Positions 10,201 to 25,705 of a DNA stretch of 64,000 nt are shown piece after piece. The position numbers were made by a program, and so were the translations under genes. The notes under the pieces were generated by a model. The model ran no database searches and was not told where the DNA came from. It saw only the letters and a list, made by a program, of their open reading frames with translations. Numbering within the stretch: the stretch's first letter is position 1; each line of letters begins with the position of its first letter. The DNA comes from Schizochytrium sp. TIO01 (taxonomy: Eukaryota > Protista > Bigyra: Labyrinthulomycetes), in contig SMSO01000014.1 in assembly GCA_004764695.1 (NCBI GenBank), positions 5,342,845 through 5,406,844 of the forward strand, written 5' to 3'.

Positions 10201-11815
10201 CATCATCGATTTTACTCAGGCTTTTGAAGTAGTCATCAGCGCGTGCCGCCCCTCAGCTAGATTCAAACCCCTCAGACCTCTTCTAAAGAGTCCACTTGGA
10301 TAAAGTTTTATAGAGAATGATAGAGATAGTGCTACTACTTCTCCAGAGGACTTTTGCAGTGCACACGTCATGCTTGAAGTTGATGAATAGTAGGATAAGT
10401 TGCGCAGTGATCATGCGAGACAGAATACCATTTTGTTTTAAACCGTGGATAAGGCTATTGAACGGGCTCACAAATTGTTTCGCTCCGCAACGAGCTGGCA
10501 ACAAGAGGGTCTTAATCGAAGCTCTACTTAGCGTGGGAAGACGCACTCCATCATGATCAGTGTAAGCCATTTGATTATTCTTGTGTAGCGCTTGAATAGT
10601 GAAACTTTTTGCTATTTTTAGTTCTGCTTGAATGAGAGGATCAGGCGTGAAAGCACTATCCATCAAGCTCGCCCTCTGAGATGGTGGCAACTACCCCTAG
10701 TATAGAGTTCCAGCTTGTCAAACCGGGGGGCACTGCCACCAAACAACAGGGGAACATGAATCATCGATCGTCATTGGATATGGAGATGTTCACATCGCGC
10801 TCAACCAATCTCTTGAAAGGATCTCCTGAGGAGAAACTTAAACAACTTGGTGATTCGTTTATAGTTTAAACTTTGACTCCGCTGAAAGAGAGGATTGTTC
10901 TTTTCACGCTCAGCAGGCCAATAATTGCCCATGAGACAGCTGCTCATCACCTAATTTTCCGATACTCCGGCAGTAACAAACGCTCACCCTTACCCCCCCT
11001 AATCAATTGACCAATGAGCTATGATTTGTCGCATACAGGGGTATGCTGGAATTTACATTTAGGACTACTTTGCTCTTGCATACCCCCTCACTGTGAAGAT
11101 GCGGCCCTTATTCATAGAGGAGACAGATAGCATATGTTTTTGGAAGATGGTCTTCTTGGTGTAAAAGTTCCTGAATTATAGAGACTTGGTAAAAGACACA
11201 GAGTGATTGATCGCCTAATTGTGCTGTTAAAGTCTATTCGCATTGCATAATGTTTGCACTTAAAGAGATGCAGAAGTGTGGAAAGCAGTTTGGAAAAGAA
11301 AAGGTTTTATATTGAATGGTTTGGGTTTGGAATCGGCAAACAAACCAAAACCTCAGCGGCAAGATCAGCAGCAACAGCGCCATCGTTGCAAGGAGGCGGA
11401 GCTACTCCAAACTGCAAAACGTCTGCCTGTCTCGAGAAGCAGACACATCAAAACCACGACAGCAACACCAACTTCCGCGAGAGGCGCACTAGCTCAGCTT
11501 TTTAGATCAAGAACACTCCTGGTAACCTGGCTGCGTTACTTTGGTCTCTTCAATACAGAGGCAAGCCCACTTCATCTGAGCCACGATCGTGGTGTTGGTG
11601 GTTAGTGGTCGTGGACCTGAACGTGAACGTGAGAGTGGGCATAAGCATCGTTAAAAGCAAAATCTTCTTCGGCACTTCAAACCAAAAACCAATTCTATAT
11701 CTACTATAAAGGAACTCCTCTCTTGCACGAAGTTTTCAAGTTTCATCATAAGGGCTCTGACCCAGAACTCAGTGCTAAGAGCCCCTGCGAGAAGGTTGGC
11801 ATAAGTGTGGAGGAT

Positions 11816-21371: not shown

Positions 21372-22817
21372 ATGCTACCTTCTTCAGCTTCAGCATCGTC
21401 ATCCAACAAAGCGAATGGTAAAGAGCGGTCTGTCACCGGTCCAAACTCTCGAACGGTCCACGACGATGATACTTTAATGGTTCATGGACACGGCCACACC
21501 GACGAGAAGGGCGTGCCATCTACATCAACTTCATCCTCTGGGACAGGTGACGGTATCCCAGGAGCACCGATTCAACCTGGCCTTGGCGGAGGATCAAGGA
21601 AACGAAGACAAAAGCCACGTGGTCGCCCCCCAGATCGGGAAACCCGTGAGGAGTTCATTATTTCGCCAAGCGATAACATGAAGAGCGAGAGGGCCCAGTG
21701 TAAGCACTGCGCTTGGGAAAAGGCGTACAACCTTCCCCGCTTACGAAGGCACCTTGCCTCTTGTGGGGGATTCCGTCAAAAGGTTGGTCGTGACCGCGTC
21801 AAAGAGCTGTGCGAGCGCTGGCAGGTAAAAATCGACACAGGGGAGAGGACCGGATCGTCGCCTGGTGTTCAACCACCACCTGTAAAGAAGACTCGACTCA
21901 CACCGCTTGAGGATGAGGCGCGAGCTTTGCGGGTTTCGGCAACTGCATCACCAGGAGTCATGCCTCGACAACCGCAGCTCCACCACCCTCACGTCCAGCA
22001 GCAGCACCAGATCCACCACTCTCACCACCAAGCCCAGCAGCAGCAGCACCAACACCACATTCACCACGTACACCACCAGCCTCAGCAGCAAGTTGGCCGC
22101 CATTTGAGACCCGAAAAGGGCCTGGTAGGACAGGCTGCGCTCTCATACACCACCAAGACGCTGCAACAAGCACGAGTCGTCTCCATCATTCGAGCTGTCG
22201 ACCGCGACACAGCTGTGGAGCGTGCCTGCGATCTTGTGAAAAACTGTGGATGCCGTGCGATTGAAATCACCAGAGATTCTAAAGATTGGCTCTATGTGCT
22301 TAAGAGCGTAGTGGATAAGGTTGGAGACCAGGCTGTGGTAGGAGTTGGCACAATTCTTGATTCGGCTGACGTGGCAACTGCTGCTGGAGCTGGTGCAAAG
22401 TTTGCGCTAAGCCCTGTAAACCCACCCGGCTTCATTGATGCGTGTCTAAACTACGATGTTCTCCCTATTCCGGGATGTTACACTCCGCAGGAAATCTTTA
22501 ACGCAACCTCGGCTGGCGCGAACTTTGTGAAGATCTTCCCAGCACAGAGCTTTGGCCTTGACTCGCTTCGTGCTTTGCGTGGAATTAGCTACTTTAAGGG
22601 GGTTAACTTCCTTGCTACAGGTGGCATTGACGAAGCCCGGGCAAGAGAATGGTTTGCCGCAGGTTGCGCAGTAGTTGGTATGGGAGCCCTGATTTGTGGT
22701 GGCGATCTGGGAGAAAAAGACCCTTCTAGGGTTGCTCAACTTCGACAAGAGTATTTAGTCACACCTGGAGGTGGGAGAGAAAAAGCGAGGGGAATTCTTG
22801 ATAGGTTAGCTTTATGA
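21372..22817 (+). CDS. AT-hook + BED-type zinc finger + Gln/His-rich linker + KDPG/KHG aldolase (Eda-like) fusion protein
   Basis: First ATG at 21372 (481 aa), one uninterrupted frame. It contains RKRRQKPRGRPP (NLS/AT-hook), AQCKHC-x12-HLASC (BED-like finger), PPVKKTR and a poly-Q/H tract. The Eda fold motifs follow: VVSIIR, AIEIT, VGVGTI, AGAKFALSP, PGCYTPQE, VKIFPA (Schiff-base Lys), ATGGI and GCAVVGMG. Confidence 0.88.
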   Translation: MLPSSASASSSNKANGKERSVTGPNSRTVHDDDTLMVHGHGHTDEKGVPSTSTSSSGTGDGIPGAPIQPGLGGGSRKRRQKPRGRPPDRETREEFIISPSDNMKSERAQCKHCAWEKAYNLPRLRRHLASCGGFRQKVGRDRVKELCERWQVKIDTGERTGSSPGVQPPPVKKTRLTPLEDEARALRVSATASPGVMPRQPQLHHPHVQQQHQIHHSHHQAQQQQHQHHIHHVHHQPQQQVGRHLRPEKGLVGQAALSYTTKTLQQARVVSIIRAVDRDTAVERACDLVKNCGCRAIEITRDSKDWLYVLKSVVDKVGDQAVVGVGTILDSADVATAAGAGAKFALSPVNPPGFIDACLNYDVLPIPGCYTPQEIFNATSAGANFVKIFPAQSFGLDSLRALRGISYFKGVNFLATGGIDEARAREWFAAGCAVVGMGALICGGDLGEKDPSRVAQLRQEYLVTPGGGREKARGILDRLAL

Positions 22818-25705
22818 TGATGTTTCTAATGGGTTTGAAATGATTCCCTTGGTCTGCAATGCAGAAAGCAAAACATAGGCAATCCACAAAAAGATAAGAA
22901 TAACACATGAGACAATCTTGGCTCTCCGCGGGCCACCGAGTTCGCCGAAGCCCATTCTTCGGCGTGCATACATCAACGCAAAGTATATAACTGCAATAAT
23001 GCAGAAAATTAAGACGGAGAATGAAAGGTTGCCAGGCTTGACAATAAACTGCTCTCCGTGGGCAGCCTTGTAGACAGCGCCAATGACCCAGGGCAGACCC
23101 AAACCAAGGAATACATTGACAGAGTTAGATCCAGTCACATTGCCAATGGAGTTGTCGGCATTATCATCATTCTCTGCCGCCATCTTACTCGCGAATGTAT
23201 CTGGAAGTGAAGTGCCCAGAGCCACGAAGGTGATCGCAGTGACACTATTGTCAAGGCCGATGAGGCAACCAAAAATCTTTGCCACGTCTCCGACGACGAT
23301 GGTAATGATCAGAATGAATAAAAGCGAAACGAAGAAACTGAGCTTGCCGTTGTAGTAGGATGTGGGGGGAACAAGCGCGAAGAGCACCTTCCATCCAAAT
23401 GACATGATGTGTAATGCACAGTCAAGATTCGAAGCTTCGGCTCCATCTTCGCCCTGGACAGTCAGAACATTAATTAGTTGTTCCTTCCAACTTCCAGAAC
23501 CAACATCAACAGCTTCGAGATGAAGTCGCATAAGAGATGCGACACGATCTACAGTAGCCTTATAATTCTCGTCACTGGTAATGGTAATACTGTTCACGCG
23601 ATGCTCACCATAAATGGCTCCACATTCAGGAAAGTTAACAATTTCAAATTCTACTGCAAATGTTGAGTCACGCTCATACGTCTTATTGTCCATGATTGCA
23701 ACCTCAATGATAGCCTCGCGCACACCATGCTCAAAAATTAATGTGCCGCTAGCCTCAAGGTAGTCAGACCCTGATTTAGCACTAGCATCCTTTGTTTTAA
23801 ACTGCACCTTGATACGTCCAGCAATTCCATTCTTGCGAAGAACCTTGATGTGAGCAACTCCTCAGACTCACGAATGACCATAGCACTGTCTTCAAAAGTA
23901 AAAGTTCCGGGTAGATCATCATCTATGATAGTGACTTCTGCAGTTGAAAATGCAGAGTGCTCCAGGTCTACATTGTGGTCAGCACCCTTGACACTGAGAA
24001 CAACCTGGAAAGTTTCGTCAGGTTCATAAACGTTGTCATCAATGATATTGACTGTAATTGTCTTTTCCTTCTCCCCCGGCAAAAAGATGAGTTTGCCGTC
24101 CGTATGCTCAAAGTCTTCGCCGCCGCGTGCAGTACCACTGCGGGTCTCAAAGTACACCATTGAGATAAGCTGCAGCTCTTCATCTGTACCTGTGCGCATG
24201 ACTGGGAGCTCAATGAAGCCGGCATTTTCATTAACACAAAATGCATAGGCCGTGAAGGAAACACGAGGCAATGTCGCCGAGATGTTGGCTACAGTATTCT
24301 CCTCATCTAGAGGAGCATCCTCTAGAATAACTGGGGAGGTATTAGGTGCTTTGACAGCTCCGAGAGAGCCAAGACCAAGACGATCGAGCTCTGATGGAGT
24401 GTTTTGCGCAAATCGCTTGGTAGTATGGCGCTTGAGAAAATCGAGACGCTTAGAAATGACCGAGCGCCCGCCTGCTAGCTTACGTCGAGCATCAATGCGG
24501 TAGCGGTTGGCAGATGTACGATCCTTGAGAAGATCACTGGCTACAGCCTTGGCCATATCATCATCAGAAAGGCCTCGAGGCAGGGACTGAAGCAGCTCGG
24601 CAATTCGACCTTTCTCCTTGTCCTCCATTGTAATGACGCGTTTTCCCGCATGAGCCCCGCCAGTGGCAAACTCAGCGGCTGCTTTCGCGGCATCTTGCTG
24701 AGCTTCAGGATTAGAGCTATCGATGGAGAATTTGCGTCTGTCACGGAGGGCTGTATGGTTTGCTGTGTCGAGCCCAATTACGTGGCCTCCATCAGGACGC
24801 ACCTTGGCAGTGGCCGACTTCCCAAAGAGCTTGGCGAAGAGTCCCTTTGACTCCAAATAAGAAAGACCTACCAGGATGGGGAAAAGAAGAAATGTAATGA
24901 TAGCTTCATGAACGTCAACAACACCATCCTCGCCAAGTACAATGAGCATCCACACGTATGCAAACACAGAGAAAAAGCTAGTAATGATAAAAACGCCATA
25001 GTTTTCGATGACACGCTTCTCCCCCTCGGGAAGCGCAACAACACACACTGAGGTGATAACCAACAAGTTGAAAGCTGCACTACCAACAATGGTACCAGGT
25101 CCCAGGCCATCCTCTGGAGGTTGGTTCAAGGTGCCTACTGTTTCAACGATGGAGAGCAAAATTTCTGGCGCAGAACTTCCCAGGGCCATGAGAGTGAGGT
25201 TCGCAACAGTTTCATTCCATACTAAAACACGATGCTCTTCAGGCTCGCCATCTTCATTTTGCACAACGATGACTTTTTCTTTACTAGTAATAACTTCAAT
25301 TGCTGCCATGAAATGATCGGAAATAATTGCGACACCAAGAAAACACCATCCTAGAAAAAGGAGGTAAATTACAGCGCGGAGATGACCTGGCCACATAAAC
25401 TCATTGAGGAGGAAAGGGAAAATATAGTCACCCATGCACTCATCATACTCAACAGGACTGTCATCTTTTGGCACAAAAAGCATAAACCCCTGAGACATTT
25501 CGGCGGCATAAAGAGAGCAATTTATGCTGGGGTCACTGAGTGAACTGTTAATGATTTCTAAAGGAGTTGTTGTGCACAGATCTAAGCTGTCATCTAATTT
25601 GTTGAGATCCAACATTGCTCGTGCATTTGATGGTTGACTGGCCAGAAAACCAAGACACAGGCAAATGCCTGCCCAACGGGATACTTGTGTTGGGACTGGA
25701 ACCAT
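22812..25705 (-). CDS. NCX: Na+/Ca2+ exchanger (SLC8/NCX type, two Calx-beta domains); frame broken by a 1-nt deletion near 23860
   Basis: Signal peptide, alpha-1 repeat NLTLMALGSSAPEILLS...GTIVGSAAFN, two Calx-beta domains, and alpha-2 repeat AITFVALGTSLPDTFASK...IGNVTGSNSVNVFLGLG. Adding one G at GAG-GA(G) joins the two ORFs as ...IRESEGVAHIKVLRKNGIAGRIKVQFKTKD..., giving 964 aa. Confidence 0.92.

Follow-up and report, generated by a model that had tools for sequence, protein, structure and literature searches.

A window of 64,000 nt from the thraustochytrid Schizochytrium sp. TIO01 (assembly GCA_004764695.1, contig SMSO01000014.1, positions 5,342,845 to 5,406,844 of the forward strand) was analyzed, and all positions given below, unless stated otherwise, are those of this window. 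One of its genes encodes a 481-amino-acid protein in which a basic region with a BED-like zinc finger is joined, in a single open reading frame (ORF), to an aldolase of the Eda/DgoA type (Table 1). The frame is open over 21327-22817 (+), with two in-frame stops shortly upstream. An initial annotation, made from the letters of the DNA, had described one ORF combining basic patches that resemble nuclear localization signals (NLS), a PRGRP motif, a finger, a Gln/His-rich tract, and a barrel, and every one of these elements was found in its place. Methionine occurs in the protein only at residues 1, 36, 103, 197, and 437, so that no ATG stands directly before the barrel and the barrel lacks a start codon of its own, as had also been noted there. 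The first 74 residues are probably disordered; residues 72-190 (119 residues) are strongly basic, with 29 Lys or Arg against 15 Asp or Glu; and 16 Gln and 15 His were counted among the 45 residues around the Gln/His tract.

Table 1. Features of the finger-aldolase gene and its upstream flank (positions in the window; TIM, triosephosphate isomerase; AF2, AlphaFold2)
Feature	Residues	Position	Strand	Basis or remark
Fusion ORF, complete, single exon	1-481	21372..22817	+	481 codons plus stop; first ATG at 21372
N-terminal Ser/Gly-rich segment	1-74	21372..21593	+	without Pfam match; codon score +0.16 (frame 0), below zero in the other frames
Basic patch SRKRRQKPRGRP	75-86	21594..21629	+	AT-hook-like PRGRP core at 21615-21629
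BED-like C2HC zinc finger	93-134	21648..21773	+	phmmer homologs, alignment A1, AF2 model
Helix packing after the finger	~132-149	21774..21818	+	AF2 model m4224b653d0e3, residues 61-78 of the modeled piece
Second basic patch PVKKTRL, NLS-like	170-176	21879..21899	+	reading of the sequence only
Gln/His-rich low-complexity linker (40 residues)	201-240	21972..22091	+	in part a tandem repeat (33 nt, imperfect)
Eda/DgoA-type class I aldolase TIM barrel	262-455	22155..22736	+	PF01081, E = 4e-29
Catalytic Glu298		22263-22265	+	IEIT motif
Schiff-base Lys387		22530-22532	+	VKIFP motif
Thr416 of ATGGI		22617-22619	+	alignment to DgoA
Upstream non-coding stretch		20772..21371	.	covered by the same contigs; left limit is a masked microsatellite, no mapped transcript start

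The aldolase half scored 101.8 bits with the Pfam profile PF01081 (cut-off, 27.8 bits) and covered profile positions 3-194 of 196, and the motifs IEIT, GVGTI, VKIFP, and ATGGI were all present in the barrel. Its closest solved relative was the 2-keto-3-deoxy-6-phosphogalactonate aldolase DgoA of E. coli (2v81, E = 3e-25); the match to Eda of T. maritima had E = 1e-20. In the alignment with 2v81, E298 and K387 fell on the Glu of VEIP and the Lys of ALKIFP, which count to positions 37 and 126 and are the catalytic Glu and the Schiff-base Lys of DgoA. The Thr of ATGGI aligned with Val154 of DgoA, a position with a role in specificity, and a Thr at this place is typical of Eda enzymes specific for 2-keto-3-deoxy-6-phosphogluconate (KDPG). 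The profile match and the alignment to DgoA thus agree with the earlier description of a full-length Eda-type barrel that retains its Glu, Lys, and TGG motif. The stand-alone Eda that this description had left to be looked for was not found: a PF01081 search of the 64-Mb, 37-contig genome returned a single locus, so the fused enzyme is the sole aldolase of this family in the organism. The nearest relatives of the aldolase half were eukaryotic fusions of a PfkB-type kinase with the same aldolase (37-44% identity, up to 129 bits), with which it shares the motifs FALSPV, TPQEI, and VKIFPAQ. A remnant of such a kinase domain in the N-terminal half was ruled out, as only the aldolase part of the Polarella glacialis fusion P0016 gave a match.

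The finger region (residues 72-185) was compared exhaustively, by phmmer, with 1.84 billion representative sequences. Nine matches were obtained at E <= 1e-3, the best being P0004 (E = 1e-18), with P0006-P0012 at E values of 2e-6 to 6e-4, and eight of the nine had the pattern F...C-x2-C-W...HL-x2-C in common; P0005 was dropped as a homolog because its match was a spurious one summed over cystatin repeats. In this unit C-x2-C is preceded, at a distance of about 15 residues, by an aromatic residue and is directly followed by Trp or another aromatic, and the end reads L-x2-HL-x2-C. In the fusion protein the putative zinc ligands read C110-x2-C113-x13-H127-x3-C131 (21699-21764); the C, C, H, and L positions were invariant in alignment A1, and F94 upstream and W115 are also in place. 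Two of the homologs pass the Pfam zf-BED profile by themselves, namely P0004, which carries five such fingers (26.1 bits), and P0007 (finger match, E = 1e-5; 32.7 bits). P0011, a hypothetical protein, comes from the chytrid Phlyctochytrium arcticum, and in P0008 the sequence RKRGRGRPP stands directly before the finger, i.e., in the same AT-hook-then-finger layout. By this transitive homology the finger can be classed as BED-like C2HC, not as a certified Pfam member; the ligands that had been described for it were borne out, and it is kin to proteins passing zf-BED, whereas its own zf-BED score was not sufficient (see below). In line with this, the search of the whole protein against Pfam reported no zinc finger, and zf-C2HE stayed below its cut-off on the isolated piece (16.3 bits).

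AF2, run with the family alignment, gave a model whose predicted local distance difference test (pLDDT) score was 89-95 over the finger and the helix that follows; a single-sequence AlphaFold model of the whole protein (pLDDT, 37.8) was not used. Foldseek with the finger model gave no match at E <= 0.001, and the finger-family profile gave no meaningful match among the PDB sequences. Language-model neighbors of the finger were BED clusters (scores, 0.85-0.90), which was taken as a lead only. The adjacent PRGRP is the classic core for binding in the minor groove of DNA; here it is preceded by RKRRQK and followed by the non-basic PDRE, the Pfam AT_hook profile did not match it even at E <= 10, and the patch also looks like a nuclear localization signal. 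An organelle-targeting peptide was ruled out as an account of the 260-residue extension, which holds a folded and conserved zinc finger.

If the finger is functional, it might bind RNA or a protein partner and not DNA, which would make the product an RNA-associated or complex-tethered aldolase and not a transcription factor. The fold matches of the finger model, all of them weak, are headed by two C2H2 fingers that bind RNA, those of TUT4 (Z = 4.6) and TUT1 (Z = 4.2), with the protein-binding ZBED3 (Z = 3.5-3.8), ZBED2 (Z = 3.3), U11-48K of the U11 snRNP (Z = 3.3), and ZBED1 (Z = 2.6) behind them, and P0004 and P0007 score on the U11-48K CHHC model as well. These Z scores, however, are all low and are tied within error with those of ZBED2 and ZBED1, the finger stands next to a minor-groove core, and its homologs pass zf-BED, a family mainly known for binding DNA; we regard this alternative as improbable.

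Whether both halves belong to one product was judged from the following data. Contigs of four probable RNA runs, with three organism or strain labels, spanned 21349-22817 with no joint, splice, or indel, and the length of the Gln/His tract was the same in all four; contig depth was uneven between adjacent regions (67 against about 6), as expected for RNA. The exact protein, from Met1 to the stop, was present in a public collection with MMETSP and EukProt as its sources, i.e., as an ORF call derived from a transcriptome. Transcripts covering one half only, or splicing that removes the finger, would have spoken against the initial annotation; neither was seen, and the contigs cross the whole ORF unspliced. 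A log-odds score of codon usage, trained on the other long ORFs of the window, was positive in frame 0 and negative in the other frames in each of three parts, namely residues 1-71, the finger segment, and the aldolase; it was negative in all six frames over the 555 nt upstream, and the Gln/His linker gave no frame-specific signal. Strains differed at 4 positions in the whole 1446-nt ORF, of which 2 lay in the 759 nt of the N-terminal half (21686 and 21734, both synonymous third positions in or next to the finger) and 2 in the 687 nt of the aldolase half (one of them Ser to Asn), against 8 in 578 nt of upstream non-coding DNA. The N-terminal half is thus about 5 times less variable than the non-coding flank (Fisher p = 0.024) and similar in this respect to the aldolase half. 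All parts lie in one frame on one mRNA; the gene is real, is transcribed, and has no intron, and its host is a thraustochytrid near Hondaea and Aurantiochytrium.

The same data bear on the possibility that the fusion is only apparent, i.e., that the gene gives two products (one of them, for example, the aldolase alone, started at Met197) or that the N-terminal frame is an open but untranslated leader. The contigs would permit this in that they are without strand or transcript ends and cover the region before the ATG too; a 1-nt indel does occur in this assembly, in the neighboring gene, and prokaryote-style callers produced aldolase-only calls of 193-200 amino acids. Against it, the N-terminal frame contains a conserved domain with significant homologs, carries coding signal, and varies by synonymous changes only, and the transcriptome-based call has exactly 481 amino acids. 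Since no run shows an indel in the ORF, despite the one in the neighboring gene, the frame is not an assembly artifact, and the four assemblies that agree over 21349-22817 are independent. No further ATG follows residue 197 before the barrel, and the short calls, which begin at GTG codons within the barrel, would lose its first strand and helix. We therefore consider an apparent fusion very improbable.

Other proteins of this kind were sought with separate region searches, as a search with the whole protein was dominated by Gln/His words (8000 candidates scored, 3 matches). The finger region matched nothing among proteins of 265-840 amino acids, a metagenome scan with the fusion protein gave no relative, and the Hondaea proteome had no protein of at least 265 amino acids with this barrel or finger, a size limit at which a shorter stand-alone aldolase would be missed. 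The protein's own 90% cluster (P0036-P0038) was represented by fragments of 193-200 amino acids that begin at internal GTG codons, apparently the work of a prokaryotic gene caller on eukaryotic contigs. Because a 200-amino-acid fragment represents this cluster, the fusion protein itself was absent from the searches, and because fragment representatives could hide orthologous fusions likewise, the absence of others is weak evidence. This is a general trap: fragments that serve as cluster representatives conceal eukaryotic fusions from length-filtered searches. The literature searched contained no description of a finger-aldolase fusion, in agreement with the initial annotation, to whose reader none was known; the combination is apparently undescribed, and both halves belong to known kinds.

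Neither a paralog of the finger nor a source element was found in the genome by protein and family-profile searches, and the genome showed hardly any zf-BED signal and no hAT dimerization domain. Most likely, the finger derives from a BED finger of the hAT type whose source element is gone from the genome. The homolog P0034, which belongs to the P0012 cluster and is longer, has Tyr in place of the Cys ligands, in a manner resembling G-to-A mutation. The continuation of this protein looks like the start of a hAT transposase core, on which Pfam is silent; it was kept as a lead and not used as evidence. On that likeness, which Pfam does not support, P0034 would fit a decaying fungal hAT element related to the finger.

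In a plainer explanation, the protein is an ordinary metabolic aldolase and the extension a passenger gained in this lineage, for example by capture of a transposase fragment and expansion of a microsatellite, with no regulatory or DNA-binding role and with an effect, at most, on solubility, localization, or turnover. This explanation would account for a finger that is a singleton in a genome with no hAT remnant, for a linker that is repeat-derived and without codon signal, and for the failure to find an ortholog with the fusion. It fits less well with an N-terminal half as invariant as the aldolase half, about 5 times below the non-coding flank and with both of its changes synonymous, with the intact state of the four zinc ligands and of the F, W, and HL positions of the family, and with the occurrence of the AT-hook-plus-finger unit in the otherwise unrelated homolog P0008. 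We think the passenger explanation somewhat unlikely.

The genome was also searched in six frames for genes that usually accompany such an aldolase, a procedure by which intron-broken genes could be missed. Edd was not found: the only two genes of the IlvD/Edd family scored about 800 bits on ilvD models and are IlvD. These two stand in tandem about 3 kb apart on contig C4 (loci L008, 1159-2940 +, and L009, 1183-3015 +). DgoK was not found in the genome, nor was a counterpart of the kinase half of P0016, and the PfkB genes resembled ribokinase, 1-phosphofructokinase, and pseudouridine kinase or, in two cases, were left unclassified, with no clear kinase for 2-keto-3-deoxygluconate (KDG) among them. 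As none of Edd, DgoK, a clear KDG kinase, and a P0016-type kinase was found, the aldolase is left without a recognized upstream pathway, and the link to the Entner-Doudoroff pathway proposed in the initial annotation is weakened and now doubtful. Cleavage of the 4-hydroxy-2-ketoglutarate (KHG) type, a uronate-type route through an unrecognized kinase, and a purely ligand-binding role are conceivable.

Taken as a whole, the protein is best read as a chimera of 481 amino acids in which an aldolase with its catalytic residues in place is brought to nucleic acid by a basic finger module, a reading to which we assign a probability of roughly 0.45. The aldolase would still cleave a 2-keto-3-deoxy acid, its phosphorylated form, or a 4-hydroxy-2-keto acid (KDPG/KHG type) to pyruvate and an aldehyde, as its family does, and the barrel would probably be trimeric, as is usual there. 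The basic finger module may take the enzyme to nucleic acid, most likely to DNA or chromatin in the nucleus, where a trimer would present three finger/AT-hook arms and so could gain three-fold avidity. That the occupancy of the barrel by a ligand controls DNA binding, which would make the protein a trigger enzyme, is speculative and distinctly unlikely. Its most specific form, a trimeric aldolase held on chromatin by its three arms, whose DNA binding switches when a 2-keto-3-deoxy acid, pyruvate, or glyoxylate fills the barrel, we hold to be improbable as it stands; were it true, the breakdown of uronates, sugar acids, or hydroxyproline would feed straight into transcription, in an organism from which the rest of the classical pathway has been lost.

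Several points weigh against the chimera reading. On the isolated piece, Pfam zf-BED (PF02892) reached 15.3 bits (E = 0.021), below its cut-off of 20.6, so that of the two profiles suggested earlier as a check, PF01081 clears its threshold and zf-BED misses. The fold matches (Z <= 4.6, with RNA-binding TUT4 and TUT1 best) cannot separate relatives that bind DNA, RNA, or protein. All eight NCBIfam subfamily or equivalog models (eda and DgoA types) matched the barrel below their cut-offs, the best being TIGR01182 with 123 against 156 bits, and the barrel is for this reason a divergent member whose substrate is not assignable from sequence. That the four runs are RNA is a guess, and their contigs show neither strand nor transcript ends. 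Finally, neither the region searches of the protein library nor the phmmer search with the finger returned another finger-aldolase fusion, and no ortholog bearing the fusion was found.

Upstream of the gene lies about 3.5 kb of AT-rich DNA (17800-21371; GC content, 0.35-0.41) with no convincing ORF, which is long for an otherwise compact region and contains GATT repeats (20471-20536) and GCTGCT-type repeats (20698-20768). Contigs that are probably RNA-derived cover 20571-21371 at the least. The stretch before the ATG is covered in runs X3, X8, and X12, and in X1 the contig of the gene starts at 21349, 23 nt before the ATG; 20772-21371 represents either a 5' untranslated region (UTR) or promoter-proximal transcription. 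Downstream, the gene converges on a neighbor at 22812-25705 (-) whose translation resembles a Na+/Ca2+ exchanger with Calx-beta-type repeats. The stop codons of the two genes, at 22815-22817 (+) for the aldolase and 22812-22814 (-) for the exchanger, abut with zero intergenic bases, so an antisense overlap of the two 3' UTRs is inevitable; individual contigs extend over both genes. The exchanger gene is split in the window into two overlapping ORFs, and runs X3 and X12 have one extra T behind 23861, with which its strand reads as a single frame of 968 codons; the window assembly has a 1-nt deletion at 23861, which is either an error or a strain-specific frameshift. Elsewhere in the window, an ORF of 1186 amino acids occupies 11723-15283, and a proteasome subunit is encoded that falls in the same 90%-identity cluster as a protein of Hondaea fermentalgiana; proteins of the window are represented in MMETSP/EukProt.

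A single-copy, expressed fusion of a BED-type finger with a complete aldolase, in protists that are genetically tractable and used in industry, could be tested directly as a link from metabolite to chromatin. Even without any regulatory role, it would be a case in which a finger of the transposase type was added to an enzyme of core metabolism.

BED fingers have repeatedly been domesticated from hAT elements (PMC8097297). With the fingers of hAT transposases and of ZBED- and CGGBP1-type factors (PMC8097297), the finger described here shares C-x2-C...H-x3-C, the upstream aromatic residue, and L-x2-HL, and as in domesticated BED proteins a single finger has been recruited into a host gene; ZBED1-3 are among its weak fold matches. 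It differs in its ligand set, which is C2HC with a short spacer of 13 residues, and in a Pfam score of its own that lies under the cut-off. Unlike hAT-derived BED proteins, moreover, the fusion has no hAT DNA-binding or dimerization domain, and the partner of the finger is a metabolic enzyme in place of regulatory domains.

Compared with the Eda/DgoA aldolases (DgoA of E. coli, 2v81; KDPG/KHG aldolases of E. coli and T. maritima, 1eua and 1wa3), the fusion protein has the same full-length barrel, with aligned Glu and Lys and with the GxGT and TGG motifs, but the barrel is preceded by some 260 additional residues that include a zinc finger, and the usual partner genes (Edd, DgoK, and a clear KdgK) are absent from its genome. 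The kinase-aldolase fusions (P0016 of Polarella glacialis, P0013 of EukProt, and P0001 and P0002 of Logan) are likewise N-terminal fusions to this barrel; they are metabolic fusions, since what precedes the barrel in them is a sugar kinase, whereas here it is a finger module. The same barrel has thus taken different partners by eukaryotic lineage, a kinase in the dinoflagellate-type proteins and a finger in this one.

To our knowledge, single proteins that combine an enzyme with DNA binding are well known in bacteria and are rare, and mostly indirect, in eukaryotes. The bacterial trigger enzymes and one-component enzyme-regulators PutA, BirA, and NadR use ribbon-helix-helix or helix-turn-helix domains, and their binding to DNA has been shown by experiment. 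The protein described here differs from them in its eukaryotic host and in its finger and AT-hook-like patch; it resembles them in uniting, on one polypeptide, a module of the DNA-binding type and an enzyme whose ligand could be the signal.

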